Assembly: GCF_003918875.1 (NCBI RefSeq)
Contig: NW_025767523.1
Span: 1,426,001-1,490,000, forward strand
Reading direction: 5' to 3'
Length of the DNA stretch: 64,000 bases
Origin: Haliotis rubra
Lineage: Eukaryota
The notes below the pieces were generated by a model. The model made no database searches. It was given only the letters and a program-made list of their open reading frames with translations, and was not told the DNA's origin. The translations under genes and the position numbers were made by a program. This document shows, piece after piece, positions 22,882 through 55,433 of the stretch. Numbering within the stretch: position 1 is the first letter of the stretch; every line of letters begins with the position of its first letter.

Positions 22882-25800
22882 TTACATTAATATACACGAC
22901 TTCTTCTTGGGTATGTTCTGCCGATCTCCAGCAACATTGTCTGAGAAGGAGGAACGAGAGGAGAAGATGCCTGAGTTTCGACTAACAGGCATTTCTCCTC
23001 CGGAAAAGCGGGTGGGGTTGTGCCCTGCAGAACTGCCATATGCCTGGTTACTGGGAGGCGCTCTCGTCCTGAATGACGGTGTGTTGCTGCTGGAGACGGG
23101 CGATGGGTAGGTGGGGGAACTGGATCCAATATATGCATGTTCGTATGTTGACGCACTCATTGAAGAGGGCCTGGTGATACTGGGGCCTGAAGATGACACA
23201 GGATTGACGACTTTAGCAGGTTGTGTTGGAACAGGCGGAGGCAATCTCGTCCTGATTGACGACGTGATGCTGGAGTAGGTTGGGGTACTGGATCCAACTG
23301 GAGCAGGTGGAGCCGGTTTTCGGATCATAGAGGGAACTGGGGCGGTCTTGGCTGGCGCACTAGCACTCGCAGGTGATCTTGTCACATTTCCAATACTTCT
23401 GCTCACAGACACGGATTCGTCAACAGTTTCATCTCTGTACTCGACAAGGTACTCGGGGTAGCACTGATTCCGCTCAAATATAACAAATATTGAAGGGTTG
23501 TTAATGTCGTTGACGCAAGAATCGTACAACACGTGGCCTTTTCTCGGTGGAGGCCTCGTGTAGCTGCTGTCTCCCAGTGTGTACTTACCAACAAGCACTC
23601 GGGCTAGGAACATGTACCTATTCCTGCCTTTGGTGTAACTGTGACTATACTTAGCGTCACGGGCGAAATACGCCCCCTTGCCGTACACCGTGGCGTTCTT
23701 GCCGCTGACTCTGAAGTCAAAGTTGTTGATGCAGATGTTGTTGACCACGTCTAGAGTGTCTGTGCCGTGGAAGAGTTGTCGCTGATCAATGCTCTCTGTG
23801 CTATGAGACATCTGAAGTGTCTTCTTCATACTGAAACATCATGTTTATATTTAAATAGGTGATTTCTAAGCGTTTTTATGCATCTATGAAATATAGTTTT
23901 TGTATATTTTGATAAACCCATTTTCCGTTTTCTAATAATTTAAGCAGGATTGATCTGAAGGTTAGCCCAGCATTTGTTTCGTTCAGAACTAAATATGAGA
24001 TCAGTAAATGGAATGTTTCATAAGACATATTCATACACACAGGATTATGATGCCACGCAAAAAAGACACTACAATGGGTAAAATCTGTCACAGTGACAAT
24101 ACATAACACGCCCTAAAACAAATACGAGTTTCCTGAAACAAGTCACTGTCGATTGCCTTGAGAGTGCCAAGTGCTCCGTTTTGAATCCGGAAACAGTGTC
24201 AGACTGGTATAGTAATATTGCAAACTGGACAACCTGTACCCATGAGATCTGCACCTGAACGTTTTCGGCGGTATCGAACCCACATATTGGATAACATGTA
24301 CCCACTCATATCTAATCAACTGGATGACTCGAACCTAAAAGTAAGATAGATAAGATTTGAAATTTGACTTGCAATTGTGTTCACAAATAGTTTCATACCG
24401 ACTGTGTAAATTCCTTCCACCGACCGACTTCAAGGACAATGTGAAACCATGACTTATTGGTTATTCATTACCTCATGTTACTGTATATTACAGTCCGCCA
24501 GATAAGCAATAAACCTACCATTTCAGATGCTGATTGAGTTTATCTGCCAGGGCCACTTGAGGACATTGGTGGAGTTAATTGGTTGATTAATTTAATGAAT
24601 GAAACCATATAATGCATAAAGGTCGGTGTAAATGTTGATGAATGAGTGAGTGAGTTTAGTTTTACGCCGCACTCCGCAATATCCCAGCTATATGGCGGCG
24701 GTCTGTAAATAATCGAGTCTGCAGTGATCAACAGCATGAGCATCGATCTGCGCAATTGGGAACCGATGACATGTGTCAACCAAGTCAGCGAAACTGACCA
24801 CCCGATCCATAGTCGCGACAAGCATAGTCGTCTTTTATGGCAAGCACATGGGTTGCTGAAGACCTATTCTACCCCGGATCTTCACGGTCGTTGATGAATG
24901 AACGACATTGTTACCAGTATATTACAGACTGCCAGATAAGCAATAAACCTACCATTTCAGATGCTGATTGATATTATCTGCTACGGCCACTTGACTAAAA
25001 TCACAGACATTGTGGAGTTCATTGGTTGATTGATTTTAATGAATGAAACCAGAGGTACAGATAAGCTGCGTATCTGCGTAAATTACGCAAATATTTATGT
25101 GAAAACTCAATTCCTGTTTAGTCCATTGCGTACAAGTACGCTTCATTTTTTTAAATACTCAATAAATCTGATCTTACATGTGTACAAACAAAAAAGATAA
25201 AATAACTGAGGTATATTAAAGGGTTCTATTTCAGCACCTGACCTTGGCAACTTGCAGTCTTTCTTATCGTTTCTCATGTTAACAGATCCAACATAAATAA
25301 CAAACACGTAAACCAACACATAAACTTTACTATAATTTTACAATTAATGGAAAATGGCAAAATACCCAATTGAGTTTGAGTGAGGTGGGTACAATTTATT
25401 TGGTTACTCAAAGGAAAATTAGGATACCCAATTGAGATTGACACAAGCGAGTACATAACTCAATGACCCAAGAAGTTATCTGTAGCTCTGTAATGAAACC
25501 ATAAAATGCATAAAGGTCGGTGTAAATGTTGATGAATAACGATATTGCCTTACAGCGAGTCATCCATATTTGTGTGTGTGTGTGTTCTCCAAATTTGAGT
25601 ACGGGTCACCAAAATAACGGATGAATGTAACAAAAACAGTTTAAGTGAGGGTTTATCATTTTCTTGGGTACGAATCGTGTATAAGGTCACTGGACAAGTG
25701 GATAAGTCGCAGAACTCGTTGTTCTCAACCAGCCAAGAAGAAATTGTTACCTCACGATACTTCCCGAATGTCTCGAATATCGGCCCATCCGGACACTGGG

Positions 25801-28800
25801 TAGGGATGTTGAAACTACTATAGGCGGAGACAGATGAAGTTAACAAGTATTTCTGTCAGTTTACTGCCAATAACACTACAGACTAGACTGACTGACTGAC
25901 TGAGTTTAGTTTTACGCCGCTTTTAGCAATATTCCAGCAATATCACGGCGGGGACACCAGGAATGGGCTTAACACATTGTGCCCATGTGGTGAATCGAAC
26001 CTGGCCTTCGGCGTGACGAGCCAACGCTTTAACCACTAGGGCTACCCCACCGCCCCTACAGACTAGAACAAAATCCACCGCCATGTAACTTTTAATAAAC
26101 TGTCAGCGAGGGCTTGACAGCAGCTGGCAGTGACGTGTAGACACTCGGCTGCTGGTGTATATATTGCACATTCTGTATGTACATGCGTTATGTATAGAAG
26201 ACCTCAATACTTTACCTGAGGAAATTGTGCCAAAGTAAAGCATTCTGCAGTCTGTATACTCGCTGGCCTTGACATCTATTCGCTGACAGAGTTTTGTAGA
26301 TGGATGACATCACAGTGGTAAATTCATCGGAGCTTGTATCCAGTTCCACTTTTTCACTGTTCTGATAACGGTCAAGTGGAGTCCAGTTCGAGGGGACGTC
26401 AGCTGGTGTTACTGCCGACAGGGACATCAATAAACTGGAACTGAATTATAGTTCTGGAAATTACAATGTTATCGTATGTTATTATGTATGGCTTTGTGCT
26501 GAGCAAGTGGACAGAATCGTAGGATATTTTCATATCAACTTACTTAATTGTTAATGAATATGACACCTTGCTAGGACACCAATGAATATGACACCTTGCT
26601 AGGACACCGGTCTCTTGTGAAAGGCATCAGTGTCCATAAATGTCACTTGTTTTACCACATCTGCTGTTAGTGTGGGGGGTGAGGTGAAATTGGGTTTAAC
26701 GTCGTGCTTGAGAATATTTCGCTCATATGACGACCTGCATGCGTGTGTATGTGTATGTGCAGCTGCTTGTACTTGCCCAGACTTAAGCTGGTTTTATAGT
26801 GCTAGCTCACTGAGATACCATGCCGCAGTGAAGCATGAATACCCCACTCAGACACAGTATACTGACTCCGAGCCGACCAGTCCTTGTTGTACCAATTAAT
26901 GCCGAGCACCAGGCAGGGACTGTTAGTGTGGGGCGTGTCGATAGACACAAGACAGGTCTCCAGTGAAAGGCCTCAGTGAACACACTTAACTGTCTCTAGT
27001 GAAAGATCTCAGTGAACCTACATAGCACTGATTCCCAAGATATCTTACCACGTCTGTTGGTAGCTCCTGGCAGTATCAAGAGATACAAACATCGGCCTCC
27101 TCTGAACTGGCCTCCGAGTTAGATACTTCCTGTTGACCTGAACCAGAGAGGTGAAGTCCAGGCGGTATTCCTGATCTGCGATAGTGTAGAAGTAAGCGTC
27201 CTGTCCAGCCAGGTACTTGGTCTCCAGGGTCAGCTGAAGTTCCGGCTGTAGGAGCAGAATGATGTGGATGAGGGATGTTTTCATCAATATTTCCTCAGCT
27301 ATACCTCTTATCCTGAAAATCCCCCCTAGCCTGCACGAAGCCTACCTAGTTTTAAAAGTCATTCAGACGTCCTTTTCAGCAAAACGATTTTTGAGTGTTT
27401 TTTGTGCTGTTGCTTATTGTATCAAACATAAACAACATCCTTATCAGTGGGACTGGGCGCCATGTTGTTGAAACTGCCAACCCAACATAGAGGTTTGTTT
27501 GGAACCCGCATTCTGATTGGTACCTTAGACCTAGCGTTGCCAGTCAAACTGGCAAATTTAGTAGGTTATGCGAGGAAGGAGTGTCATGGCGGGACATTCC
27601 AAGTCATGGTTACCGGTATAAAGGGCGACCACTCTTTACTGTTGTCCTGCCAGTACCACACCCACTGCGTGTAACGAGATATGTCGTCAGTTCCGGCTTC
27701 CACGTAAGATCGGGTTGACAGTCGCCGGAAACTGAGCTTGTTGTACGACTTCTGCCGTGGTGGGTCAAGTATTTCTTCAAAGTTTACTTCTGATGATGCA
27801 ATTTCTCCATGTAACCGGACCTGAAAATTATATTACATTAGATAAAACTTTGTGGGTTCTTCATATAAGTCAATCCCAAGCACAGAACAGAAATAATAGT
27901 GAATAGTGTGTCCTTCAGTAACGGTGAAATACTCATTACATACACAGTGCGGAATTCCCTCACCATTGATGAAAGATGCACAAACAGAAAGACGTTTAAA
28001 CTTGTGTAGGGCTCACAAAAAACAAGATTGGGAAAATGTTTTCTTTTCTGATGAAAGTTCTGTCTGGCTTTTCCCGATCTGTGTGAAAATGTGGACAAAA
28101 GATACCGTGAAACCTATCTACCAATGCTCAAAACATAGCCCGAAATTTCATATGTGGGGTGGGATATCATCTTGTGGAGTGACGCCGTTGTGCATTTGCA
28201 CTGGAAATTCGACGAAGATATGTTGACATCTTAAATGATCACTTTCTTCCGACGGCCCGAACACTGTATGAAGATAATTAGATTTTCCAGCATGATATCG
28301 ACCCAAAAACACACTGCGGGCTACATAAAACAGTGGTTGTCCGACGAAAAAGTTCAAGTTTTAGACTGGCCAGCCCAGATCTTAACCCTATTGAAAATGT
28401 TTGGAGACTAATGAAGGACAGAATAAACCAAAATGGGCTTAGAAATATTGAGGACATGAAGAAAAAAGTGGTCCAAGATTGGGATAGGCTGTCACACGAT
28501 TTCATGAAAACTTTGATCGGTAGTGTACCTAGACGCATTTAGTCGTGTATTGCTGGGCAGGGAGGTCTCACAAAGTACTGAAAAGACACTTAGACTGTAA
28601 GAGAACTCATATCTCAACATATTCATTTTATTAAAACTTCTATAGTTTATATACATGTATTAGATATTTGCCGAAACAACTTTCTCAATAATTTCTGGGA
28701 ACAATATATCACCTCGTGAGGTTCTTGAGAGGCATACAGATGTTGGTATTCAAGTATAAGACAAAAATTATGGATGTCAATTTGTTTTTATTGTACACAC

Positions 28801-30497
28801 GTTCTGGGCTTTTCCTTGTGTTGTGTATACAATATACAATAAGGAAGTTGACATCCATAATATATATATTTTGTCTTATATCACCTCAATACAAGATCGC
28901 AATTAGCAATTTCATTTTAATTTTTTTTCGTAAAGTTACACAAGCAAATATATACAAACTAAGAAGTAAAGCAGCATTATGAGTTACAGCCAGTATTTCC
29001 CCGCTTGGCAAATATATAGATCGTTTGTTACTGTTCAAATGCAGCAATCACATGCAAAAAGTCTACAGAAGTGAGGAATGCAAAACGCCGTTTCGCCTCG
29101 CCTTTTTCAACCTAGATATAATCGTTGTGGTAAGAAAAAAGTTGTGCAAAACCGATGTCCCAGAATGAACATTCATGAAGTGTTTGTAAAAAGATCCGCA
29201 CATGGTCTAAAAATACCCACTCAAAAGAATGGAATAATCAACAATAAAATTCCTTTGATCAGCTGTGAGGAGAAAGGCACCAGAAATGGTAATTGAACCC
29301 CATTCATCGGTGTGGTTACGTAAAGGATTGATAGAACTCACCTCAGCCACTGTGCTGTCGTCATTGTCACAGAACGATTCCTCCACCTTCTCCATCTCAC
29401 TGTTGGACAACAGTTTCCAATCGCCAATGTTGTCCAGGTACTGCCACACATACGGAGCCTTCTTCTGGTGGTGGACACGAGGACAATAACAAGTGTCCCC
29501 TATGTATCGTTCACACAGTTCCCTCGCCCCTCCGGTCAGGCCTCGTCTTACACTCTGTACTAAAACATCAGTCACATTCTTTATTGTTAAATGATTTGTT
29601 TATCTGCCCTAAAGGTCACCGTTAAACGTTTTGAATGCATTTGCCTGTTGTTTAATGTCCCGGCATGTTTTGAATGTAAACGACCCGTGAAGGTCCGGGT
29701 TTGAATATTGATGTTCAGTAACTCATGCTTGAGTTAGTGAGTTATTATTTAACGTCACATCGGCAATATTTCAGCCATATCGTGACGAAACTCATGCTTG
29801 TCGTAAGAGGAGACTAACGGGATCGGGTGGTCTGGCTCGCTGACTTGGTAGACACATGTCATCGGTTCCAAATCGCGCAGATAGATGCTCATGTTGTTGA
29901 TCACTGGATTGCCTGGTCCAGATTCGATTATTTACAGACCGCCGCCATATTGCTGGAATATTGCTGAGTGCGGCCTAAAACTAAAGTCACTCCCTCACTA
30001 CCCCACTCAAGCGAACCCCAATAGAGTTATGTCCTTTGGAGAGCTCTTTACAAATATCCTATAACGCAACATGTGATTGAAACCAGTTCGGCAAACATCG
30101 ACAACACCGCGTGCGACAGTTTTCGATGTACGGAGCAATTGTTTACATTCCATATATGGCATGTGTTACTGTTTTGCAGCTGTTCGCACCGAAGTTTGAA
30201 TTATCGATTTCAGGCAAGTCGTAAAGGAAAATAAGTATTTTATTGCATTAGTACGAGCTTAAGTGAGTACATATTCCGAAATATATATAATAGAGGCCAA
30301 AATATTGTCGAAAATATGTGACACTGTGCTTTTAACAGGTCAGTCTCACCAGTGACTTCTGTCGATTCATCTGTGTTCTCTGATGAAGCCACACCTCTTC
30401 CCCTACCCCTGCCTCGTCCTCTGCCCCTCCCTCGTCCTCTACCACGCCCTCTTCCTCTTCCCCTCTCAAAACCTTGTATTCCTGTGAAACCGCTCAT
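22882..30497 (-). CDS. PARP12: PARP12/ZAP-like mono-ADP-ribosyltransferase, copy 1 (GR repeat, CCCH-like finger, 2 WWE, ART domain, S/P tail, CaaX), ~645 aa
   Basis: Coding exons: 30497-30350, 29559-29342, 27820-27614, 27245-27049, 26434-26216, 23830-22882. GT-AG with consistent phases (1938 nt). Motifs: PYVWQY, FRRLST..TQWVWYWQD, YRLDFTSLVQVN..RRPVQRRPMFVS, LQNALLW, LFHGT, YGKGAYFARDA, MFLARVLVG, DSCVND..PSIFVIFE..QCYPEY. The symbol means '-like'; orthology among PARP7/11/12/13 is not resolved. Confidence 0.9.
24643..24889 (-). mobile_element. Nin/Deu-domain SINE (family B) in a PARP copy 1 intron
   Basis: Family consensus from gaccgtgaag to (actc)n; TSD gttgatgaatga. Confidence 0.8.
25050..25490. 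mobile_element. MITE with 15-bp TIRs
   Basis: cagaggtacagataa / ttatctgtagctctg, flanked by gaatgaaac / taatgaaac. The uninterrupted site is visible in the local duplicate at ~24590-24640. Confidence 0.75.
25885..26056 (-). mobile_element. tRNA-derived SINE (family A)
   Basis: Consensus match; TSD tacagactaga; empty site in the paralog at ~48790. Confidence 0.85.
26678..26920 (-). mobile_element. Meta-domain-type SINE (family C), 5'-truncated
   Basis: Reverse complement of the 3' part of 45673-46021; flanked by ctgttagtgtgggg repeats. Confidence 0.75.
27900..28581 (+). mobile_element. Decayed Tc1/mariner transposase in a PARP copy 1 intron
   Basis: DWENVFFSDESS, KFHMWGGIS, FQHD, SPDLNPIENVW and ..GGLTKY* spread over several frames with stops. 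Confidence 0.9.
29682..30003 (+). mobile_element. Nin/Deu-domain SINE (family B) with a nested ~60-bp retro-tail insertion
   Basis: gacccgtgaaggtccggg start; nested piece ~29732-29788 flanked by aactcatgcttg duplication. Confidence 0.8.
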
Positions 30498-31391
30498 GTC
30501 GAGGAACATATGCACTGTAAGGAGAATAATTATGCCAAAATAATTTTCTCCCGCATGGGATGTCACTTTCAATCCTGCGCGTCAGGCCATAATTTATGCT
30601 AATACAAATATGAAGATGAATATGTCATAAATATAATGAACACAAATATGTTTTGTTTGAAACAAAGTGCCTCGTTAAGTTTGTTGCTATTCTTATTGGG
30701 AAAAATTGTTCTTCATCACGCTCGTTTCCAACAAAATATATACGAAAACAATAGATTCTCACTTTCACGAAAAATGAGGCCTGAGAATCCTTTATGTTGC
30801 TATATATAGCCTTATTGTGCAATGACGTCAGTTACACTGCTGGGGCGGCACTTGTGGTGCAAGTGTCACGCGAATGCCCGGGTTCGATTCCCCACATGGT
30901 ACAATGTGTGAAGCCCATTTCTGGTGTCCCCCATCGTGATATTGCTGAACTATTGACGTAGAACCCAACTCGCTCACACTTACTGGCTCAAACAACAAAT
31001 TATCGGTTATTTGGAAAAACGTAACAGATGTCTCCCATGCTTAAAACTTCACTCAGTGTTTGTCATGCTTGTTACTTTGACCAGTGTCTCAGACAGTGTT
31101 TGATTTGAACATTCATCCTGTCAGTGACTTGTCATACATGTAACTTTCATGTTGACCCTGAAATACAAATCATTTCGGAAGAGCGCGTAAAACCTGCAAA
31201 TCAGCATTATCAATACGCATTACATTAATCAGTGTCTGACATACATGTTGCTTGAATCAGTGTAGTGTCTGCCATGGATGTTACTCTTATCAGGATCTCC
31301 TGTGTCTATGATTTAATCTGTGACACGAGGCACATATGACGCATTATCGATTCTGACACCAGTATATTGACCCTGTACAACAGTAAACATA

Positions 31392-31460
31392 CCTGCACGC
31401 TTACGGATCAAGATTGAATTTCACCGTTCAGTCAGATCAACTGGGATTATGGAGCTACAC
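31392..31460 (-). other. Probable non-coding 5'UTR exon of PARP copy 1 (a further donor at ~31570)
   Basis: tttcag|gtgtagctccat...gcag|gtatgt; conserved island in copy 2 at ~58255-58310, and donor gcgg|gtaag conserved at ~58405. Confidence 0.5.
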
Positions 31461-31697
31461 CTGAAACACAATATGCCTACTAAATTACATACATGTATTT
31501 CTCTGTAAAAGTCTCTCCTAATCAAATTTGAAGTGTTTACTGTTTTCGACATTGTTCAGTATACCTTACCCGCTGGGTGGTCTTGCCCGACAGAATCCGA
31601 CTGAGGCAGTAAGAACGGGATCCTCTCACTAAGGACAAATGACACTATACTAACCCTATCCACCATGTGACTTCCGAGTATGTGAACGAGTGTTACT

Positions 31698-31776
31698 TTC
31701 TTGGAAAACGTGGCTAATATATCACTGATAAACACCATCGCGCTCTCTCGGTTTCGGTTTGCAAGACTTCCTAGAA
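31698..31776. promoter_or_regulatory. GAS (TTCTTGGAA) + ISRE-like (GGTTTCGGTTTG) + GAS (TTCCTAGAA) cluster upstream of PARP copy 1
   Basis: Motifs at 31698-31706, 31750-31761 and 31768-31776, just upstream of the first predicted exon; the first GAS is conserved in copy 2. Confidence 0.55.
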
Positions 31777-37299: not shown

Positions 37300-38900
37300 A
37301 TTTCGATGATGAGTATATAACGCAGCTGGAATGGGTTTTCTTCCCAAACTTTCAGCGACCAAAATCATGTGGCAAGTGTTCCTGAATGTTAGTCCAGCCT
37401 TGTCACCAGGTCATCTCGTTCTTATGGTTGATTTCAATATCCATGTTGATTCTGTGTCTGACTCCTTTGCTAAATCCTTCTGTGACATCTTTCAATCTCC
37501 TACAGCACGTTTCTGGACCAACTCACCGACCAGGTCATACACAACTAGTCATCACCAAGGATAGTTGTGATATTCTGGATGTCGTTGATGTTAGTGACAA
37601 ACAGTTATCTGATCATTCACTTATTCACTGCTCTGTCAAACTTACTACTCCTAAGCAAGTGAGAAAAGACATTAGCTACAGGAAGACTTGAAATATAGAC
37701 ATTAGACAGGTTTCTAATGACACTAAATCTTCTGAGCTGCTACAGTCACTCTCTGATTCTTGTGGAGTTGATGATAAGACTGATGTGTTGCTTATCACGA
37801 ATATTGGATAAGCATGCTCTTCTGCATTCTCTTCCCACAGAGGTTACTCCTGTCATATCTTCCTACGTAACCTCTGTTCTAATACGGCCCTTTCATGGTG
37901 TGAGCGATCAAGACTCGTGATTGGAGGCAATCAGATTTAGTTGTGCAATCAGCGACGTTGTTTCAAAAGTGATCATTCGCAAGGCCTCGGTAATTTCCGT
38001 ATACTTCGAGAAAACTAAACCTCTTCCCCTGCGCGATGCGCAAACGTTTCTTCTAGACAGAACTCAGTCATGTTATGGCGGATCAGTGGCGTCTCTTGTG
38101 TATAACATCAACACAAGTCCCCGGCAGATGGGGGATATTTGTGGCCTCACATTTGCTTGTGTTAGTCTAAGTTGAATCTAAGTCGATGTAACAGGTGTTC
38201 TGATTGGATAGAAAGAATTCGTTTTGCGATCTTTTGCCGCTAGGGGATTTTACGAGAACCGGGAAATATGGCCGTATTAGAACAGAGGTTCGTAGGAAGA
38301 TATGACAAGTAACCTCTGTGGGAAGAGAATGGCTCCTCTGAAGTCTAGTTCTGTTGTCATTCGTCCTTGTTCTGTTGTCATATATTCCTTGTTGAACAGT
38401 CTGTTGAAGCAGGATACAAATTGTACTCTAGCCAATAGTTTTGCCAGGATTTTTCAACGCCAAGATATGGGATATACGCCAAGAACTTGACATTAGACTT
38501 CTCTGCAGAATCAATTTTCAATGAGTAATATTTCAGTAGTACATATTTGTCTGAACTCTCCTTAACCTATCCGGAAGAAATAAGTCAGATCATGTAAGCA
38601 AGCTTGGATTCTCTCATCAGCCCCTTATCCATTTGAGGGATGCCAAAGTTTTCAAACAGGCAGTCCTCTAATTAAAGAGGCCAATTTAAATTCGGATGAG
38701 TTAAAAAACTACCGGCCAGTATCTAATGTATCTTTCATTTCAAAATGTTTGGAAAACAATTTTCACGAAGGCTTGAAGAACACCTACTCAATAACAACCT
38801 GCTTGAACTCTTTCAGAGTGCTTACAAATCAAAACGTAGCACAGAGACTGCAGTTGTTCGTATCCATAACGATGTCATGAGGGCAATGGACCAGCATTGA
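37300..38900 (+). mobile_element. Decayed L2/CR1-like LINE ORF2 (endonuclease and RT fragments)
   Basis: DFNIHVD, QHVSGPTH..GHT..LVI, LSDHSLI, LKNYRPVSNVSFISKCLE, FQSAY...STETA....ND; many frameshifts. Confidence 0.8.
37825..38331. mobile_element. MITE with ~65-bp TIRs and 9-bp TSD (Mutator-like) nested in the LINE
   Basis: cattctcttcccacagaggttac...aatacggcc / ggccgtatt...gtaacctctgtgggaagagaatg; TSD gctcttctg / gctcctctg. Confidence 0.85.
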
Positions 38901-39629: not shown

Positions 39630-40858
39630 GGGTCCTTGGACAGGAGGCGGAGAATGCATTTCTGTGGAGAAACACTTACTGATAGCAATGTGGTACCTGG
39701 CAACACAATTCACAACATATCTGACGGCTTTAACATAACTGAGTCATCTGTTGTACGTTGTGAAAGGGTGCATCATGTTTTGTTGAATGATGTTAAACCA
39801 AGCCTCGAGGTCAAGAACGACAACAAGTCATTGATAATTTCTTTGAAAAGCGAAACTTTCCCGGGATAGTTCGCGCAACTGATGCATCGCACATCAAGAT
39901 AAAAGCTCCCCATGAACACAGTCAAACATATGTTATCCGACTGGGGTTTCATTCAGTTGTCTTGCAGGCTGTTTGTAGAGATGACATGAGGTTTATTGAT
40001 TGTGTAGCTGGTTGGCCAGGAAGTTGTCATGACTCGCGTGTTTTGAAAAACTCTGATCTTTGGACACATGGACAACAGTTGTGTGGTCAAGGTCACGTGC
40101 TTGGTGACGCTGCCTATCCACTGACTGCTAACACCATTTAGGGACAACGGTCACTTAACACAAGAACAGAGACATTACAATACTAGCCAGAGTTCTGCTC
40201 GCACTGTAATTGAGCGTGCATTTGCACTTCTGAAAGGACGGTTTCGCAAGCTTCAGTATCTGGACACCCAGCAACAGAAAACAGCATTCGTAACTTTCGT
40301 CCCTTCCGTAACCTATCCCTCTTGTAGACGTTTTATTGAACGTGGCTCTGTCTGAGCGCAAAAGCGCAGAGAGAAAGAATTATTCTAGTTGCCGAACTAT
40401 TTTCAAAGGGCATGTAACTCTTGTTTACTTTGAAAACAAACCTGGCATTCACGCCAAGGAATTTTTTTCCGAGTGAACGGTGAATAGTTCCCTACGCTAT
40501 AATTTAAATATACTTGAAGTGTGTAGGGAAAACTTATCCAAGCCGAAATGAAAATTATTTCAAACAAATATTTTGACCCAATTTTTTCTCTACATACGCG
40601 CATTCTGATTGGCTGGGGGATTATTTCTCCCGGACACGGCTAAGACAGGGGTACGATTAGTTACGAGTGCTGAAAACAGCAGTGAACACTATCATGGTAT
40701 GTTGTATCATACACAACATTTGTATCTCAACACATGAAGATCTCAGAGACTTTATTCTGGATGGCCCTGCTCAAAACATTGACAATGGCTACCTTGCTCA
40801 ACAGAATGATGTTGAGGGTACCACTAAACGCAATCATATTGTTAGAAACCTGAATTAA
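39630..40858 (+). mobile_element. Decayed PIF/Harbinger (HARBI1-like, DDE_Tnp_4) transposase
   Basis: FNITESSVVRC, GWPGSCHDSRVLKNS, LGDAAYPL, LTPFRDNGHLTQEQRHYN..SSARTVIERAFALLKGRFRKL, CCIIHNIC; frameshifted and interrupted. Confidence 0.88.
40282..40672. mobile_element. MITE inserted in the Harbinger transposase
   Basis: TIRs cagcattcgtaact / agttacgagtgctg with an aaaa duplication; removing it restores YLDTQQQKTAVNT. Confidence 0.75.
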
Positions 40859-40994
40859 AGGTTATGCACAGTGTTCAAAAAGTTATCAAATTACTAGCTA
40901 TGTCAAGAACTGCAATTCTTAATCGACCTGTTTCTCATGAACAACAAAGAGAAATTTCAATAAAATAGTTTATTCAGCAAACAATGTTGTCTTT

Positions 40995-43598: not shown

Positions 43599-43868
43599 TG
43601 TGAGTGAGTGAGTGAGTTTAGTTTTACGCCGGTCCGGGTTAGAATATTGATCTTCAGTAACTCATGCTTGTCGTAAAAGGCGACTAACGGGATCGGGTGG
43701 TCAGGCTCGCTCGCTTGGTTGACACATGTCATCGGTTCCCCATTGCATTGATCGATGCTCATGCTGTTGATCACTGGATTGTCTGATCCAGACTCGATTA
43801 TTTACAGACCGCAGCCATATAGCTGAAATATTGACGAGTACGACGTAAAACTAAACTCACTCACTCAC
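43599..43868 (+). mobile_element. Nin/Deu-domain SINE (family B) with an inverted tail at its 5' end
   Basis: gtgagtgagtgagttttagttttacgcc is fused to ggtccgggttagaat...; the 3' end is gtaaaactaaactcactcactcac. Confidence 0.8.
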
Positions 43869-45567: not shown

Positions 45568-45672
45568 ATTACAGTTTCCGCAAGCGTGACACCACGACTG
45601 ACGCTAACTCACGCACAACGATGAAAAACTGTGAAAATGAAGTGTGCACCCCCCTTTTCTCAATAGTGCACA

Positions 45673-46021
45673 GCGTGGTGTAGTGGTTAGAGCGTCCGCC
45701 CGAGAGCGGAAGGTCGCGGGTTCGATCCCCGACCGCGTCATACCAAAAGACGTTAAAATATGGTACTTATTGGTCCCTGCCTGGCGCTCGGCATTAATGG
45801 GTACAACAAGGACTGGTTGGCTCGGAGTCAGTATAATGTGTCTGAGTAGGGTATTCATGCTTCACTGCGGCATGGTATCTCAGTGGGCTAGCACTATAAA
45901 AACCAGCTGAAGTCTGGGCTTAGTACAAGCAGCCGCACATACACATACACACGCATGCACGTCGTCATATGAGCGAAATATTCTCAAGCACGACGTTAAA
46001 CCCAATTTCATCTCACCTCAC
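45673..46021 (+). mobile_element. tRNA-headed SINE with Meta-type central domain (family C, ~350 bp)
   Basis: tggtgtagtggttagagc A box, gggttcgatccc B box, ccctgcctggcgctcggcattaa core, (cacct)n tail, TSD ctcaatagtgcaca. Confidence 0.85.
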
Positions 46022-46988
46022 CTCAATAGTGCACACACACACACACGCGCACGAACGCACGCACGCGCACACCGCTCTCAAAAAGTATCCGATCCTGCTT
46101 CTCCTCATTTCCGACTATTTCTTATCAGAATGTTTCGGGCTACTTACATGTGACATTTATGCATATACGTTGCTTCATACAACGAAAGTTTCCTTCAAAA
46201 AATCCCGCGTACTCGTGTCAGTGAACACGCCATTTTCAGGAAGTCGCTTCCCGATAGTGATGTCATACGTACGTCAACATTGTTACATATTTGGTATTTT
46301 CACTGATGTGAGGTAATGAATGAAAATACACACGATCATTTCTATCCTATTGCTTACATTTTCAGTTCTAATGCTTCTTTCGTATTTTTACTTGCTTTTT
46401 TTAATGTCAGTATTTATATTTTTTGCTGTGAGACTAGACAGGAGACCAGTCTAAATCAATTGGCACCTATTACGTCATAATCAAAGGGCGGTAACTCTCG
46501 CCTGTTAAGCTCGGTAAACAAAGGCCTCATAATGGCATAACATTTCAGTACTTATATTGAGGGTTATATTTTCATTGTAAGAAAAATGAGTGTATATTTT
46601 CAAACACTGACATTAACTAATTGAAAAATTCCATTTTGTTTCACATAAGAATAAATGTGATGTTTTCGTGTACACTTCCCCATTTAGGATGTTGAATGTT
46701 GAAAGATCTCTGTAATTTCCTTTCCAGACTGAAATTTGTTTTAAGGCTTGTTTGGTAACTCGGTTCTGGTATTCTTTAACTCGTCATGTAGTCTGGATGT
46801 TTCTTCAACATAAGTCTGGATCCAGACAAGATAGAAGACGCAATGATCAACGATGTCGGTGGACATTCTACAGATCGCATCACTTAACGTCACCGCCCGA
46901 TCCATGCAGTCGTCTCTTGTGACGGGAATGAATTGTTGACCCATGGGAAAGGCAATGTAGACGAATACGGTTTTCAAACGGTCGAACG

Positions 46989-49900
46989 TTACATTAATAT
47001 ACACACTTTCGTTTTGGGTGTGTTCTGCCGAGCATGATTCGCTGGAGCTGCAACATTGTCTGAGAAACGGGAACCAGAGGAGGAGACGCCTGAGTTTTGA
47101 CTAACAGGTATTTCACTTCTGGAAACCTGAGTGGTGTTTTGCCCAGCAGCACTGCCATATGCCTGGTTACTGGATGGCGCTCTCGTCCTGAATGACGATG
47201 TGTTGCAGGTGGAGTCGGACGATGGGTAGGTTGGGGAACTGGATCCAGCATGTGCACCTCCGTATGTTGACACACTCGCTGAGGAGTACCTAGGGGTGCT
47301 CGGGGGTGAGGATGACGCAGGCGGATTGATGACTGTAGCAGGTAGTGTTGGAACAGGTGAAGGCGCTCTCGTCCCGAATGACGATCTGTTGCTGGTGGAG
47401 ACGGACGATGGGTAGGCTGGGGAACTGGATCCAACAGATGCATATCCGTGTGTTGACACACTCCCTAAGGAGGGGCTGGGGTTCCTGAGGCCTGATGATG
47501 ACGCAGGATTGACGACTTTAGCAGGTTGTGTTGGAACAGGCTGTGCCGGTTTTCGGATCATAGAGGGAACTGGAGCGGTCTTGGCTGGCGCACTAGCACT
47601 CGCAGGTGATCTTGTCACATTTCCAATACTTCTGCTTACAGACACGGATTCGTCAACACTTTCATCTCTGTACTCGACAAGGTACTCGGGATAGCACTGA
47701 TTTCGCTCAAATATAACAAATATTGAAGGGTTGTTTATGTCGTTGACGCAAGAATCGTACAACACGTGGCCTTTTCTCGGTGGAGGCCTCGTGTAGCTGC
47801 TGTCTCCCAGTGCGTACTTACCAACAAGCACTCGGGCTAGGAACATGTACCTATTCCTGCCTTTGGTGTAACAGTGACTATACTTAGCGTCACGGGCGAA
47901 GTACGCCCCCTTGCCGTACATCGTGGCGTTCTTGCCGCTGACTCTGAAGTCAAAGTTGTTGATGCAGATGTTGTCGACCACGTCTAGAGTGTCTGTGCCG
48001 TGGAAGAGATGTCGCTCATCAATGCTCTCGGTGCTATGAGACACCTGAAGTGTCCTCTTCATACTGAAACATCACGTTTATATATTGTGATTTGTCATCG
48101 TTTTTATGCATCGATTAAATACAGTTTTGTATATTTTGATAAACCCATTTTCCACACATCTATTAATTCAAACAGAATGTGGTCTGAAGGTTAGCCCAGC
48201 ATTAGTTTCGTTCAGAACTAAATGTGATATCAGTAAATGGAATGTTTCATAAGAAAAACACAGGATTATGATGCCACGCAAAAACCCACAACAATGGGTA
48301 AAATCTGTCAAAGTAACAATACATAACAGGCCCTAAAACACATCCGAGTTTTCAGAAAAGGTCACTGTCGATTGCCTTGAGAATGGCAAGACCTGGAACC
48401 AGTGTTGGAGACTGGCATAGTGATATTGCGAACTGGAGAACCCGTACCCACGGAGATCTGAACCTGAACATTTTCGGCGGTCTCGTACCCACACATAACA
48501 TGTACCCACCCATACCACAGGCCCTCGTGGATTAAAAATTGCGAAGATTAAAGATTAAAAAGACAAAAATATTTTTTAGATGACCCCCGACACGAAATGC
48601 TACACAGTACAATGCATTATAATGTATTGTACTGTGAAGCATTTCGAGTCGGGGGTCATCTCAAATGTTAAAAAAATTTAACATCTTTAATCCTCGCAAA
48701 GACACGAGGGCCTGTGACCCATGCCTAATCAACTGGATAACTCGTAACTAAAAGTAAAATAGATAAGATTTGAAACATTAATTAATACTACAGCCTAGAA
48801 CAAAATCCACCGCCATGTAACTTTTAAAAAACTTTTAGCGACGGCTTGACAGCAGCTAGCATTAACGTGTAAACACTCGGTTGCTCGTATATATATTGCA
48901 TATTCTGTATGTACATGCTTAATGTATGGAACACCTCAATACTTTACCTGAGGAAATTGAGGCAAAGTAAAGCATTCTGCAGTCTGTATACTCGCTGCAC
49001 TTGACATCTGTCCGCTGACAGAGTTTTGTAGATGGATGACATCACAGTGGTAAACTCATCGGAGCTTGTATTCAGTTCCACTTTTTCACTGTTCTGATAA
49101 CGGTCAAGCGGAGCCCAGTGCGAGGAGACGTCAGTCGGTGGTACCGTCGCCGGGGACATCAATAAACTGGAACTGAATAACAGTTCTGTAAATTACAACG
49201 TTCTCGTATGTTACCACGCATGGTTGTGTGGTGCGCAAGTGGATTGAATCGTATGGTAAGGTAATGAATTTACGGACACAAACAATTGTCGTTTGTGAAA
49301 GCCTCAATGAACCTACATGTCTTACCACATCTTCTGCAGGTGTCGGGGCGGTGGGGTAGCTAAATGGTTAAAGCGTTCGCTCGTCACGCCTACGGGTTCG
49401 ACAAACAATTGTCGCCCATTTCTGGTGTCCCCCGCCGTGATATTGCTGGAATATTGCTAAAAGCGGCGTAAAACCATACTCAGCCAGTCAGCCAGTCTGC
49501 AGGTGTCGAGCCTCGCCAGCAGACAAGGTCACGGGTCTTTTGTGAAAGGATTCAGTGGGCATACATGACACAGAAATCTTACCACATCTACTGTCGCCGT
49601 TTGGCATCGCCAGCAGACAAGGTTACAGATCTCTTGCGAAAGGCCTTAATGAACACTTTTAATTGTCAGTGAAAAATTACCACATCTTGTGGGGATGTTA
49701 GGTGTTGTCAGCAGACACAACACCCTGTCTCTAGTGAAGGATCTCAGTGAACCTACATATAACTGATTCCCCAGATATCTTACCACGTCTGTTGGCAGCT
49801 CCTGGCGTCATCAAGAGATACAAACATCGGCCTCCTCTGGACTGGCCTCCGAGTTAGAGTCTTCCTGTTGACCTGAACCAGAGAGGTGAAGTCCAGGCGG

Positions 49901-52900
49901 TATTCCTGATCTGCGATAGTGTAGAGGTAGGTGTTCTGTCCAGCCAGGTACTTGGTCTCCAGGGTCAGCTGAAGTTCCGGCTGTAGGAGCAGAATGATGT
50001 GGATGAGGGATGTTTTCATCAATATTTCCTCAGCTATACCTCTTAGTCTTATCCTGAAAATCCCCCTGGCCTTCACAAGGAATACCTAGTAGGTTTAATA
50101 AACATTCAGACGTCCTTTTCAGCAAACAGATTTTTGAGTGCTTTTTGTGAGGTGGGTTTCCAGTATTGTATTAAGCACAAACGACATCCTTATCATTGGG
50201 ACTGGGCGCCATGTTGTTGAAACTGCCAAGCCAACATAGAGGTTTGTTTGGAACCCGCATTCTGATTGGTACCTTAGACCTAGCGTTGCCAGTCAAACAG
50301 GCAAATTGAAACCAAGGGCAGGTAACTTGCAACTGCATGGGGTAGTAGGTTATGCGAGGTAGAAAAGTCATGGCGGGGGTTAACGGGTGTCCTCTCACTT
50401 AGCCATGGTCAGATTCTGTCAAAACAGGTCTCTCACATTGCCAGAGTGGGATTTGGCTGACTAGGGTTAGTGTTTGATAAAACCTTGTCCAGATGAGCCA
50501 TAGTCTGTATCAACAAAATGCTCAATTAGTGAGATTAGTGAAATTTGTATCAAAGTGAGATACATGTACATTGGTATTCTATTATTGGGTTAATGAGTTA
50601 TGCCAGGAAGAAGTGTCATGGCGGGGCAATGCAAGTCATGGTTACCGGTATAAAGGGCGACCACTCTTTACTGTTGTCCTGCCAGTACCACACCCACTGC
50701 GTGTAATGAGATATTTCGTCAGTTCCGGCTTCCACGTAAGATCGGGTTGACAGTCGCCGGAAACTGAGCTTGTTGTACGACGTCTGCCCTGGTGGGTCAA
50801 GTATTTCTTCAAAGTTTACTTCTGTTGATGCAATCTCTCCATGTAATCGGACCTGGAAATTATATTACATTAGATAAAACTTTGTGGGTCAATCCCAAGC
50901 ACAGAACAGAATAAATAGTGAATAGTGTGTCCTTCAGTTACGGTGAAATACTCAATACATACACAGCGCGGAATTCTCTGCCCATTGATGAAAGATGCAC
51001 AAAAAGAAACACGTTTAAACTGGTGTAGGGCTCACGAAATCAAGATTGGAATAATGATTTCATTTCTGATGAAAGTTCTGTCTGACTTTTTCCGATCTCT
51101 GCGAACATTTGGACAAAAGGTACAGTGAAACCAACGCTCAAAACATAGCCCGAAATTTCATATGTGGGGTGGGATATCATCACGTGGAGTGACGCCGTTG
51201 TGTATTTTCACTGGAAATTTGACGAAGATATGTTGACATCTTAAATCATAACCTCCTTCCAAAGGCCCAAACACTGTATGAAGATAATTAGATTTTCCAG
51301 CATGATATCGACCAAACGCACACTGCGGGCTACACTAAACAGTGGTTGTCCGACGAAAATGTTCAAGTTTTAGACTGGTCCTGCTACAGCCCAGATCTAT
51401 TTGAAAGAAGAAAGAATCATAAGTGTGCATTTTGTTATAAGATGTTACATGGCTTAACACCAGCGTACTTAACAAGATTAGCTCCACAAAACTCACTATT
51501 GCCTTCGTAATGCCAGAGATATTCAGCCAGAAAACACTAGACAAGTACAACACTCTAAATATTTTCTTCCATCAGTCATACAAGCCTGGAATAATCTCGA
51601 CGAATCTGTTAAATCGGCGGAATCATTGTCTAAATTTAAATCACATCGATCTTACTAATTACACTCTTAATCCCAGAACTATAAAATACTTTAACTTTTT
51701 CCAAATCATCATGTCCAAACTGAGACTAGGATGTAGCGATTTAAACTTGCACCAATTCGAAAGACATCTAAAAGAAATTAGTTCATGCCAATGTAGCTTT
51801 TCAACAGAATATATCTCGCACTTCTTTATTTTCTGCCCGCTTTATAGTCATATCAGACATATCCAGTACCGCAATAGATTCTCTGATGACGAGACTAAGG
51901 TTTTGTTTGTTTTGAAAGTTGCCTCATTGAATTATATATCGCTTTTGCACAATCTTAATTTGTTTAATTTGTTTTCTCTCGGGAGAGGCATTAATATAGC
52001 CCTAGTTCGACCTGTTTGCCAATCCTTTTTGTTCGTTCTGTATTGTCTTTCTAATGTATTGTCTATTTTCTGAATAAATACTGTTTAAACCAAAATGTTC
52101 AAGTTTTAGACTGGTCCAGCTACAGCTCAGATCTTAACCTTAATGAGAATGTATGGGGACTAATGAAGGACAGAGTAAACCAAAAAGGACTAGAAATATT
52201 GAGGATCTGAAGAAAGAAGTGGTCAAAGATTGGGATACGCTGTCACACGATTTTTTGTACAAACTTTGATCGGTAGTGTACCTAGGCGCATTCAGTCGTG
52301 TGTTGCAGGGCAGGGAGGTCTCACAAAGTACTGAAAAGACTTAGACTGTAAGAGAACCATATCTCAACATATTCATTTAATTAAAACTTCTATAGCTTAT
52401 ATACATGTACGAAACAAAATATGTATACGTATCCATTTTCTGTCAACTACACTTCGTTTCGAGCGTGGGTAGATGCAATATGACAGTGATTGCTGTGACT
52501 AATGCAGGTCGAAGTAAATAAAAATATAGGAAAGACACACGGTTTCATTGCAGCTGATAGAAACATTCTTTTTTAACATTTTGAGTAAAATTACCGTCTC
52601 GTTGACAGTTATCGTTATGATATAAAAAAGAAAACCAACACAGATTCCCTCGTTAGGGGTCAGTAAAATGTTTAATGTTGGCCGCGATTAGGACCCCAAC
52701 AGAAGTAACAGAGATGTCTATTCAACGGACTGTTATTATGGTCAGCTAAGTCCGGATAACAAAGCATTGTTCTCATTGCAAGTTGATTGTTGGGAGTAGT
52801 CCGGATTGTGGAGAAACCGGATTACACAGAGTCTGGATTTGACAGATTCCATTGTATTTGATATTTGCCGAAACAAGTTTCTCAATAATTTCTGGGAATA

Positions 52901-55433
52901 CTTTTGTGGGAATAGGTTTTTGAGAGGCATACAGATGTTGGTATTCAAGTATAAGACATAATATCGTGGATGACAACGTCTTTATATTGTATACACAACG
53001 TTTCTGGGCTTCTCCTTGTGTTGTGTAGGCAATAAAAAGAAGCTGATATCCATAATATTTGGGGCGGTGGGGTAGCCTAATGGTTAAAGCGTTGGCTCGT
53101 CACGCCGAAGACCCGGGTTCGAATCCCCACATGGGCACAATGTGTGAAGCCCATTTCTGGTGTCCCCCGCCGTGATGTTGCTGGAATATTGCTAAAAGCG
53201 GTGTAAAACCAAACTCAGTCAGTCAGTCCATAATATTGTGTGGTATACTATATCACCTCAATACAAGATCGCAATAATCAATTTCAATTTAAGTTTCTTT
53301 CGAAATATTACACAAGCAAATATATATAAATTCAGAAGTAAAGCAGTATTTCCCCAGTATTTCCCCGCTTGGCAAATATGTTTCCTTCTAGATCGTTTGT
53401 TACTGTTCGCATGCGGCAATCACATGCAAAAAGTCAAATCTACAGAAGTGAGGAATGCAAAACGCCGTTACGCTTCGTTTTTTTCCACTTAGACATAATC
53501 GTTGTGGTAAGAAAGCCTAAATAGACATAATCGTTGTTGTGAAGAAGCCCAGTTAGATATAATCGCTGTTCTAAGGAAGCGCAGCTTAGAAACAATCGTT
53601 CAAAACAGAATGGACATTTAAACAATGCTTGTAAGATCTATTCATAGTCTAAAAAGATCCATCAGATGGCACTCAAAAGGGTAATACAAGCTTAATAATC
53701 AAACCAAAAGTCACTATTGATTGGCTGTGAGAGGAAGGACACCAGGGTTTGACACCAGATACGGTAAAGACCCCTTTCGTGATTTACGGAAAGGGTCGAT
53801 TGCTGCTGAATGAATTCACCTCAACCTCTGTGCTGTTGTCATTGTCACAGAACGATTCCTCCACAATTTCCATCTCACTGTTGGACAACAGTTTCCAATC
53901 GCCAATGTTGACCAGGTACTGCCACACATACGGAGCCTTCTTCTGGTGGTGGACACGAGGACAATAACAAGTGCCCCATATGTATCGTTCACACAGTTCC
54001 CTCGCCCCTCCGGTCAGGCCTCGTCTTACACTCTGTACTGAAACATCAGTCACATTCTTTATTGTTTAATGATTTGTTTATCTGCCTTTGCGTTCACTGT
54101 TAAACGTTTTGAATGTATTTGTTTGTTTCTTGTTAAACGTCCCACCACGTTTTAAATGTAAACATATACAATACATGTCCAAATATACAGTTTTCAGAAT
54201 TGTTATAGAATCATGAACGGTAGCTAGATTTGGTGAGTTACCTCCAAGGACTTTCAGGATCTAAACAGATGAAATTTGCCATTTTACAACAACTTCAACG
54301 GTCGGTACTGGTCAGTCTGAATGTGAACACGTTAAGCTGTCAAAGACAATCTTAAACAGCCCCCAGAAAAGTTACTATATGATTAATTCAAACGAAATTA
54401 CGTATTTAGATTACAATATTAACTTACAAAGTTCGTATGAATTAATGCAGGATTGCATTAAATCGACTCTCGCGCCCACTACTGGCCGAGCATTATTTCA
54501 AGCGAACCCCATTGACATGATAGAGTTATGTCCCTTGGAGAGTTCTTTACGAATACTAGACCGCCTCCGTGGTGTAGTGGTTAGAGCGTCCGCCCGGAGA
54601 GCGAAAGGTCGCGGGTTCGATCCCCGACTGCGTCATACCAAAAGAAGTTAAAATATGGTACTTTTTGGTCCCTGCCTGGCGCTCGGCATTAATGGGTACA
54701 ACAAGGACTGGTCGGCTCGGAGTCAGTATAATGTGTCTGAGTGGGGTATTCATGCTTCACTGCGGCATGGTATCTCAGTGGGCTAGCACTATAAGTCTTG
54801 GCTAGTACAAGCAGCCGCACATACCCATACACACGCATGCACGTCGTCATATGAGCGAAATATTCTCAAGCGCGACATTTAATCCAATTTCACCTCACCT
54901 CACCTTTACGAATACGAAACTTGTGATTGGAACCAGTTCGGCAAACACCGACAACACCCACTCTCCTACCCAGAGTTCCATGCGGTCAGCCAGCATAGTA
55001 CATTATGCTGAGTCATCGCTGCGCCGGTGTGTGCGACAACACCGTGTGCGGCAGTTTTCTATGTACGGAGCAATTGTTTACATTATGGCAAGTGTGATCT
55101 ATTTGGAAGTATTCGCCTCGAAGTTTCAAATATCGATTTCAGGCAAGTCGTAAGGGATAATAAGTCTTTTATTGCATCAACAGGAAGCTTAAATGAGTGT
55201 GTATGCCCCAATATATGCAATACAGGCCAAACTATTGTAGAAAATATGTGACATTGTGCCTTTAATATCGTTAACAGGTTAATCTCACCCGTGACTTCTG
55301 TACATTCATCTGTGTTTGTCTCTGATGACGTCACACCTCTTCCCCAACCCCTGCTTCGTCCTCTGCCCCTCCTTCGTCCTCTACCACGCCCTCTTCCTCT
55401 CTCAAAACCTTGTATTCCTGTGAAAACGCTCAT
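46989..55433 (-). CDS. PARP12: PARP12/ZAP-like mono-ADP-ribosyltransferase, copy 2, ~686 aa
   Basis: Coding exons: 55433-55289, 54037-53820, 50852-50646, 49980-49784, 49166-48948, 48063-46989 (2061 nt). Internal exon sizes 218/207/197/219 are identical to copy 1, no stops seen, same motifs, ends KTKVCILM*. The symbol means '-like'. Confidence 0.9.
48516..48716. mobile_element. Fully palindromic MITE with 8-bp TSD (hAT/P-like)
   Basis: cacaggccctcgtg / cacgagggcctgtg; TSD acccatac / acccatgc; empty site in copy 1 at ~24305. Confidence 0.85.
49345..49495 (+). mobile_element. tRNA-derived SINE (family A)
   Basis: Consensus ends; TSD tctgcaggtgtc. Confidence 0.8.
50920..52334 (+). mobile_element. 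Decayed Tc1 transposase, paralogous to 27900-28581, interrupted by a LINE fragment
   Basis: Same intron and position as in copy 1, with shared lesions (e.g. gaagatatgttga, gataattag). Confidence 0.88.
51399..52091 (+). mobile_element. 5'-truncated LINE 3' end (CR1/L2-group-like)
   Basis: SKLRLGCSDLN..C.C..E...HFFIFCPLYSHIR zinc-knuckle-like ORF2 end, aataaatactgtttaaac terminus, flanked by a 43-bp duplication. Confidence 0.75.
53061..53227 (+). mobile_element. tRNA-derived SINE (family A)
   Basis: Consensus match; TSD tccataatatt; empty site in copy 1 at ~28855. Confidence 0.88.
54558..54903 (+). mobile_element. tRNA-headed Meta-type SINE (family C)
   Basis: Close match to 45673-46021; TSD ctttacgaatac. 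Confidence 0.85.

Follow-up and report, generated by a model that had tools for sequence, protein, structure and literature searches.

A stretch of 64,000 nucleotides from the abalone Haliotis rubra (contig NW_025767523.1, positions 1,426,001 to 1,490,000; G000:C2633:1426001-1490000 in our notation, hereafter the window) was analysed, and two PARP12-like genes, g1 and g2, were found on its minus strand. Both are PARP12-type mono-ADP-ribosyltransferase genes, catalysis being predicted from their intact His-Tyr-Ile (H-Y-I) motifs and their fold, and both end in a CaaX prenylation box (Cys, two aliphatic residues and a variable residue X). The products combine a WWE/ADP-ribosyltransferase (ART) core with a disordered tether and the CaaX box, which would make them lipidated, membrane-held mono-ADP-ribosyltransferases (mono-ARTs) whose CaaX end was most likely inherited; we put the probability of this reading at roughly 0.72. 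Among the homologs compared, H-Y-I triad and CaaX box are often united; this pairing probably goes back to the bilaterian ancestor and is neither a novelty of abalone nor a convergent gain.

Gene models and catalytic core

Six-exon models were derived from exon-sized open frames, tblastn searches with molluscan homologs and a splice-site scan. The GT-AG model of g1 (22882-30497, minus strand) is one complete open reading frame (ORF) of 647 amino acids with its ATG at 30497 and coding exons at 30497-30350, 29559-29342, 27820-27614, 27245-27049, 26440-26216 and 23830-22882, stop included. The GT-AG model of g2 (46989-55433, minus strand; 688 amino acids) has coding exons at 55433-55289, 54037-53820, 50852-50646, 49980-49784, 49172-48948 and 48063-46989, stop included; its ATG at 55433 is also the end coordinate given by an earlier reading of this DNA from its letters (the sequence-only reading). 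The translation of g2 was identical at all 688 residues to P0121, named 'protein mono-ADP-ribosyltransferase PARP12-like' of Haliotis rubra by NCBI, and the g1 product was absent from the public proteins returned by the homolog search with P0121. Pfam was scanned exon by exon for g1, and g2 (= P0121) served as proxy for whole-protein Pfam and structure work. The nearest full-length homologs likewise carry the public name PARP12-like.

Pfam analysis of g2 revealed WWE (PF02825) at residues 174-239 with 61.6 bits and PARP (PF00644) from residue 293 with 78.8 bits (cut-off 26.7); a WWE_4 match at residues 85-138 reached 21.8 bits, slightly below its cut-off of 24.5. The last exon of g1 scored 70.6 bits for PARP, and its exon 2 matched WWE_4 at E 2e-5. 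The finger-WWE region of g2 aligned to residues 274-476 of PARP12 at 32% identity and was modelled with a predicted local distance difference test score (pLDDT) of 84-96. The segment preceding the first WWE domain, LCERYIWGTCYCPRVHH, aligned to the fifth zinc finger (ZnF5) of PARP12 but is four residues shorter between its second and its third Cys; its C/C/C/H ligands fell on columns at least 90% conserved among 44 homologs. In g1, exon 2 (29342-29559, minus strand) encodes the beginning of WWE1 as well as this shortened CCCH finger (C-x7-C-x-C-x3-H), and it aligned to PARP12 ZnF5-WWE1. The finger was unrecognised by Pfam in the abalone proteins. No match to PF25261, PF24356 or PF00642 was obtained in P0121, P0249 and P0127, while chimpanzee PARP12 and oyster P0265 were positive. 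Residues 1-58 of g2 are a disordered Gly-Arg repeat (pLDDT below 50) with no secondary structure. The finger-WWE-WWE-ART layout proposed in the sequence-only reading was borne out by the ZnF5 alignment and the WWE, WWE_4 and PARP matches.

The best solved relative of the ART domain was the human PARP12 catalytic domain (phmmer E 1e-48), followed in the same search by PARP15 (4e-31) and ZAP (3e-30); structures of PARP7 and PARP11 were absent from the solved-structure matches, so fish PARP11 sequences on the tree described below were the sole basis for comparison with these two. The AlphaFold model of g2, built from a 44-sequence alignment, had a confident core at about residues 60-470 (pLDDT mostly 84-96). 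Foldseek ranked PARP12 first, and the modelled ART domain superimposed on 8xpx and 2pqf with a TM score of 0.91 and a root-mean-square deviation of 1.8 Å; the structural comparison covered the ART domain, not ZnF5-WWE. All motifs quoted in the sequence-only reading were located on the minus strand: LFHGT at 23761-23775 in g1 and 47994-48008 in g2, GAYFA at 23662-23676 and 47895-47909, and PSIFVIFE at 23473-23496 and 47706-47729. The triad codons of g1, assigned by alignment to PARP12, lie at 23767-23769 (His), 23668-23670 (Tyr) and 23488-23490 (Ile), and those of g2, assigned by alignment and the AlphaFold fold match, at 48000-48002, 47901-47903 and 47721-47723. The multiple domain alignment reads HYI for both genes, and the motifs match those of the human PARP12 structures, in line with the earlier proposal of an intact, PARP12-type triad.

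The tail and its CaaX terminus

In both genes, a single unbroken ORF in the last exon (318 codons in g1, 360 in g2) extends from the beginning of the C-terminal two-thirds of the ART domain through the tail to the CaaX box, so that the tail could be escaped only by a splice within this exon. The Ser/Pro-rich disordered linker between ART domain and box comprises about 180 amino acids in g1 (22897-23424, minus strand) and about 220 in g2 (47004-47660, minus strand), where one more internal repeat unit is found. Both tails are net basic and consist to 63-67% of S/T/P/A/G/N, with 17-18 K/R against 5-6 D/E; g1 accounts for the values of 63%, 18 and 6. In the AlphaFold model, the tail of g2 (residues 474-688) lacks secondary structure and stays under a pLDDT of 50. 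No hydrophobic segment was found in the tails (maximum 19-residue Kyte-Doolittle mean 0.84), which leaves the CaaX box and the nearby Lys/Arg as the only visible membrane determinant. A secreted or mucin-like nature of the Ser/Pro tail was considered and rejected, as no signal-peptide-like or transmembrane segment was present and PARP and WWE are cytosolic domains.

The ends PKKKSCILM and PKTKVCILM given in the sequence-only reading were both found as described. In g1, PKKKS is encoded at 22897-22911, CILM at 22885-22896 and the stop at 22882-22884; in g2, PKTKV lies at 47004-47018, CILM at 46992-47003 and the stop at 46989-46991, all on the minus strand. KKKSCILM with its stop thus spans 22882-22908 and KTKVCILM with its stop 46989-47015, and a TAA-type stop is used in both genes. 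In each CILM the Cys stands four residues from the C-terminus, with Ile at a1, Leu at a2 and Met as X. According to the established CaaX rule, a box with X = M, S, Q, A or C is directed to farnesyltransferase. Three of the eight residues preceding the Cys are K/R in each gene (Arg counted), the net charge over the preceding 12 residues is +3, and no second Cys was present near the box in either tail end. The genome assembly contains three prenyltransferase beta-repeat loci and one ICMT locus as prenylation machinery.

Transcripts of g1 run through the tail to the stop

RNA contigs from three small H. rubra runs (X1, X2 and X4) were compared with the g1 stretch; contigs of a further run, X16, span the introns and represent DNA. 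The X1, X2 and X4 contigs were recognised as transcript assemblies by exact jumps at predicted junctions and by the lack of any depth over unique intron sequence. The junctions 23830|26216, 26440|27049 and 27245|27614 were skipped exactly, which confirmed four exons of g1; the supporting contigs were record 3 of X1, records 17 and 19 of X2 and records 21 and 25 of X4. Record 21 of X4 (26333-26216|23830-22736) contains exon 5, the whole last exon, the stop and 146 nt of 3′ untranslated region (UTR); compared with the window it has 10 gap letters, the positions of which are not listed. Records 1-3 of X1 tile 22881-23830 gaplessly. Together, these contigs indicate that the g1 mRNA carries the full tail, CILM and the stop. 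No splice joint within the g1 tail was present among the joints listed for the RNA contigs, and the possibility raised with the sequence-only reading, that transcripts splice out before CILM, was thus not borne out for g1, the contigs running unbroken through tail and stop. Among the differences listed for the three RNA runs and one DNA run, no variant fell in the CILM or PKKKS codons of g1, while polymorphism was present in the tail only a few dozen bases before PKKKS-CILM. Sequence words of g1 were present at a share of about 0.5 in the RNA runs and about 0.4 in the DNA runs.

Conservation of the CaaX box among homologs

The homolog pool (n = 348) comprised 120 word-indexed sequences selected with the last exon, 128 representatives of 50%-identity clusters from an exhaustive HMMER search and 100 further full-length homologs. 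CxxX ends were found in 62, 72 and 55 of these, respectively. In total 189 of 348 (54%) ended in CxxX, compared with about 9 (about 3%) expected from a Cys content of 2.7%; the terminal CxxX is therefore not a chance occurrence. Among the 189, a2 was V, I, L or M in 186 (98%), and X was of the farnesyltransferase type (Q/S/M/A/C) in 163 and of the geranylgeranyltransferase-I type (L/F) in 25. Across the family, K/R made up 33-40% of residues at positions -3 to -6 compared with a background of 12%, and acidic residues often adjoined the Cys.

By named taxon, the box was found in 25 of 39 Mollusca, the single brachiopod, 2 of 3 Hemichordata, 24 of 42 teleost and holostean PARP12-like proteins, the single lungfish, 1 of 2 amphibians, 1 of 3 reptiles and 1 of 5 birds. 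It was found neither in the one shark nor in Nematostella (0/1), and neither in mammalian PARP12 (0/10) nor in fish PARP11 (0/7). The terminal Cys, for which a survey of homologs had been proposed, is thus conserved from molluscs to lungfish and some tetrapods, far more strongly and widely than the sequence-only reading assumed. H-Y-I triad and CaaX occurred together in 52 of 115 named homologs; at least six major animal groups are represented, the sequences coming from Mollusca, Brachiopoda and Hemichordata and from teleosts, lungfish, an amphibian, a reptile and a bird. By these counts the combination is not peculiar to invertebrates, and the contrast between a PARP12 active without CaaX and a ZAP dead with it is mammal-centred. 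No report of CaaX in fish, invertebrate or other non-ZAP PARP12-like proteins was found in the literature searched, the coverage of which was incomplete.

On a tree of the ART domain, from which the tail was excluded, the CaaX state was clustered, requiring a minimum of 17 changes, compared with 38.8 for shuffled labels, and none of 500 shuffles gave a value as low. The CaaX state was present in the lophotrochozoan clade, in the hemichordate pair and in both vertebrate PARP12 subclades. Of the two origins left open in the sequence-only reading, an ancestral, widely retained box is favoured by this evidence, and a convergent gain is less favoured.

Local cluster, duplication and sequence evolution

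The loci of g1 and g2 lie about 24 kb apart in the same orientation and share 80-91% DNA identity, introns and 3′UTR included. A remnant of one Tc1/mariner-type transposase (DDE_3) is present in intron 2 of both genes (28282-28539 and 51292-51507, plus strand). The extended identity and the common remnant indicate that g1 and g2 are true segmental duplicates, and the insertion predates the duplication. The tandem duplication assumed in the sequence-only reading was thereby upheld, the two copies standing on one strand within a local cluster. When the genome was searched in six frames, contig C2633 yielded four ART exons and C413 one further, closer relative. The intact CaaX paralogs of H. rubra number at least four, all with X = Met, and a fifth has a decayed end; P0249 (966 amino acids) ends in KRKDCTIM and P0127 (1180 amino acids) in SPDSCVVM. 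The group of g1, g2 and P0249 is specific to H. rubra (SH-aLRT support 96) within the Haliotis clade (100), which indicates that the copies either arose by expansion or were made alike by gene conversion in recent times. Many more distant PARP catalytic exons (43-54% identity to the query) are clustered on contigs C2257, C902, C668 and C325, so that the PARP repertoire of this species is, judged by sequence, a large one.

The fifth copy, paralog B, is the fourth member of the cluster on C2633 and enters the window with its 3′ end (2-1534, plus strand), its ART exon lying outside at G000:C2633:1419798. Its tail is an array of tandem repeats of 138 bp (46 codons) that extends over about 6.5 kb, is open in two frames and shows several frame breaks. 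Paralog B ends with ...PFSPEEKGQIVLYC and a stop, compared with ...PFSPEKKRKDCTIM and a stop in P0249, and the end reads GQIVLYC instead of KRKDCTIM, with a remnant TGT ACT ATA out of frame. The altered end and the displaced remnant indicate that the CaaX box has decayed in this copy, which is either a decaying gene or an assembly error in the repeat array.

The ratio of nonsynonymous to synonymous substitution (dN/dS) between g1 and g2 was 0.40 for the ART domain, 0.97 for the finger/WWE region and 1.07 for the tail, based on small counts. The protein alignment contained 45 gap columns, nearly all of them in the tail, and the final block RQN-PK-K-CILM was kept. The synonymous distance was about 0.05 in exons 1-4 (the 5′ half) but reached about 0.22 in the tail. 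This difference suggests that the 5′ half has undergone gene conversion or that the tail turns over much more quickly.

Comparison with known systems

The abalone proteins share with human and other vertebrate PARP12 the order ZnF5-WWE1-WWE2-ART, and with human PARP12 a catalytic domain about 45-50% identical, the motifs LFHGT, G[AS]YFA and PSIFVIFE, and the fold. They differ from human PARP12 at the N-terminus, where the Gly-Arg repeat stands instead of a winged helix and tandem RNA-binding CCCH fingers, and in the deletion of four amino acids from the remaining finger. Mammalian PARP12 ends in ...FFGxRQ about 20 amino acids past the domain and has no CaaX, whereas the abalone proteins add a linker of 180-220 amino acids and CILM. 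The CaaX motif of ZAP has been described as missing from PARP12 (PMC8568172).

In ZAP-L, farnesylation of the box leads to endomembrane targeting and is required for full antiviral activity (PMC8568172, PMC9888277); the protein departs from the catalytic triad, shows no ADP-ribosylation, and its CVIS box closes the PARP domain (PMC8568172). The predicted CaaX anchor is the only working likeness of the abalone proteins to ZAP-L. Their H-Y-I is kept, whereas the ZAP-L triad is degenerate; their CaaX box stands on a long tether; and they are without the N-terminal CpG-binding finger array on which ZAP-L depends. On the tree they fall into a lophotrochozoan clade (SH-aLRT 95), apart from the vertebrate clades, and are by sequence not ZAP orthologs. 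The main paper on the origin of ZAP and PARP12 makes no mention of CaaX, farnesyl or prenyl (PMC8102003).

The abalone proteins also resemble teleost PARP12-like proteins (si:ch73-252i11.1 or PARP12b-type) and those of other invertebrates, in which H-Y-I, linker and terminal CaaX are all present. The linker measures 13-140 amino acids in fish PARP12-like proteins and 30-470 in molluscs, and examples of the box are CIIS, CVIA and CIIC in fishes and CSIQ, CVLQ, CVIS and CTIM in molluscs. Most of these proteins keep the tandem fingers of zf-CCCH_PARP12 (e.g. P0265), whereas the Haliotis cluster has lost them. K-Ras4B has a Cys-aliphatic-aliphatic-Met box after a long lysine run. The abalone proteins likewise have a CaaX box with Met preceded by lysines, but of the eight residues ahead of the Cys only three are basic (KKK, or K-K with one Arg). 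The likeness to a second membrane signal of K-Ras4B type, put forward in the sequence-only reading, was overstated, given three K/R in eight residues and a net charge of +3.

Upstream element and other features of the window

Upstream of g1, at 31698-31776 (minus strand), an element was found that resembles an interferon-gamma-activated site (GAS), an interferon-stimulated response element (ISRE) and a second GAS in succession. In the counterpart upstream of g2 (58540-58664, minus strand), only the proximal GAS, TTCCAAGAA, is conserved and an unrelated insert replaces the ISRE part. A search for the ISRE through the window with up to 3 mismatches returned the g1 copy alone, and about one in three shuffled sequences also matched. 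A conserved donor, GCGG|GTAAGG, is present at about 31566 and about 58400 and suggests that g1 and g2 each have a first exon that is noncoding.

Interspersed repeats occur in the introns of g1 at 24608-24975, 25896-26079 and 26632-26999, with very high summed depth in RNA and DNA runs; from their loose ends, ...GGGGAATCGAACCCGGGT, they are probably tRNA-related elements similar to short interspersed elements. Copies were also observed near g2 and in intergenic sequence. Between g1 and g2 lies a fragment of a PIF/Harbinger-type transposase (DDE_Tnp_4; 39797-40352, plus strand). ORFs were also present at 37313-38172, and the one that was scanned had no Pfam match. A multi-exon gene for an organic-anion transporter (OATP/SLCO) with OATP and Kazal exons (5077-15484, minus strand) sits between the plus-strand and the minus-strand PARP12-like genes. 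A prefoldin-subunit exon is found at the right end of the window (62974-63282, plus strand), and a gap of 164 N extends from 59194 to 59357.

Proposed mechanism and alternative explanations

As X is Met, the Cys of CILM would be lipidated by cytosolic farnesyltransferase, after which RCE1 would cut off -ILM and the C-terminus thus exposed would be methylated by ICMT; these steps of lipidation, proteolysis and methylation are established CaaX biology. The farnesyl group and the nearby Lys/Arg would hold the protein at the cytosolic face of endomembranes or of the plasma membrane. The linker of 180-220 amino acids would then act as a flexible tether, through which the WWE/ART module might reach targets near the membrane and mono-ADP-ribosylate them. 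For g1 and g2 themselves, we infer lipidation, localisation and enzymatic activity.

Several observations weigh against this reading. The E1-E2 and E2-E3 junctions of g1 are predicted only and lie outside the compared stretch, and words from the tail and 3′UTR of g2 were present at a share of only about 0.10 in the RNA runs, compared with about 0.4 in the DNA runs, so that g2 may be weakly expressed in the sampled runs or poorly assembled. The basic patch before the Cys is modest, as is typical of the family, and the dN/dS near 1 in the WWE region could reflect relaxed constraint. About 45% of homologs are without CaaX; truncation or faulty gene models probably account for part of this number, but on the sequences real losses exist, including that in the neighbouring paralog B. 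Finally, counts on an unrooted ART tree cannot separate gain from loss.

The low share of g2 words, set against about 50% for g1 in the same RNA runs, and the loss of the ISRE from its upstream region would fit g2 being a weakly expressed or decaying duplicate with only g1 functional. We nevertheless regard this as quite unlikely, since the ORF of g2 is complete with splice sites, triad and CaaX intact, the ART dN/dS of 0.40 points to purifying selection since the duplication, and the public annotation predicts the identical protein. It is more improbable still that the terminal CILM is unmodified or irrelevant, kept merely by descent in soluble proteins. The remainder of the tail evolves neutrally, and in paralog B the box is gone while the ART ORF shows no obvious loss. 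The box persists, however, at the ends of tails that have diverged past alignment across phyla, with Cys at -4, an almost invariably aliphatic a2 and an X of prenyltransferase type; its frequency far exceeds the chance expectation, and CILM was free of listed variants in a polymorphic tail. Another possibility is that the proteins are prenylated and tethered to membranes, but that their work lies in general membrane biology, Golgi trafficking or stress and not in antiviral defence. Human PARP12 has been reported at the Golgi (PMC5656619), roles at Golgi and stress granules are ascribed to it, no link of g1 or g2 to infection emerged in this analysis, and no expression data for these abalone genes were found in the literature searched, which was incompletely covered; g2 moreover keeps only the proximal GAS half of the upstream element. 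On the other hand, the vertebrate genes for PARP12 and ZAP are antiviral and are stimulated by interferon, and transcripts of the Aplysia PARP12 ortholog co-vary with those of IRF1, a RIG-I-like gene and ZNFX1 (PMC8195618). A lineage-specific multi-copy cluster with fast tails and a WWE-region dN/dS near 1 would also fit the dynamics of immune genes. We consider a non-antiviral function doubtful, although it is the strongest of the competing explanations; an innate-immune or antiviral role of g1 and g2, suggested by family analogy, is in turn the weakest of our own inferences.

With regard to ancestry, the molluscan CaaX box might have been gained convergently, independently of vertebrate ZAP-L and of fish PARP12-like proteins. 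A four-residue C-terminal motif evolves easily, at least nine of the minimum 17 state changes are forced by well-supported branches, and the single cnidarian sampled is without the box. We hold such a convergent gain to be improbable, as the composite layout of ART domain, disordered linker, basic residues at -3 to -6 and CaaX recurs in lophotrochozoans, hemichordates and vertebrates, and as a box disappears far more readily, through truncation, frameshift or mis-annotation, than it is gained again and again, paralog B providing a loss in progress. Since the same layout occurs in all three superphyla and loss is mechanistically easy, inheritance of the CaaX end from at least the bilaterian ancestor is the favoured alternative, its likelihood ranging from a little better than even to rather good according to how strictly 'ancestral' is understood. 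A more specific scenario, to which we give a slight preference, is that tethered prenylation was ancestral to bilaterian PARP12/ZAP and that the original enzyme was both membrane-anchored and active, mammalian PARP12 having lost the anchor and ZAP-L having kept it but lost catalysis.

Significance

In the literature searched, the CaaX box is treated as a feature of ZAP-L (PMC8568172), while here it was found in over half of about 350 PARP12-like proteins, in most cases alongside an intact H-Y-I triad, and this family-wide occurrence changes the question of how the membrane targeting of ZAP-L originated. If the scenario of an anchored and active ancestor is true, the farnesyl dependence of ZAP-L would be inherited, and membrane-proximal mono-ADP-ribosylation would be an old innate defence. 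Molluscs and fishes would then retain the original combination, amplified in abalone to a fast-evolving cluster. The proteins described here would belong to a predicted class of active, membrane-tethered mono-ARTs not present in mammals, for which fish PARP12-like genes and those of abalone and oyster, in species hit by herpesvirus epizootics, are natural test cases. The lineage-specific cluster of four or five paralogs in abalone may accordingly be regarded as a set of candidate innate-immune effectors.

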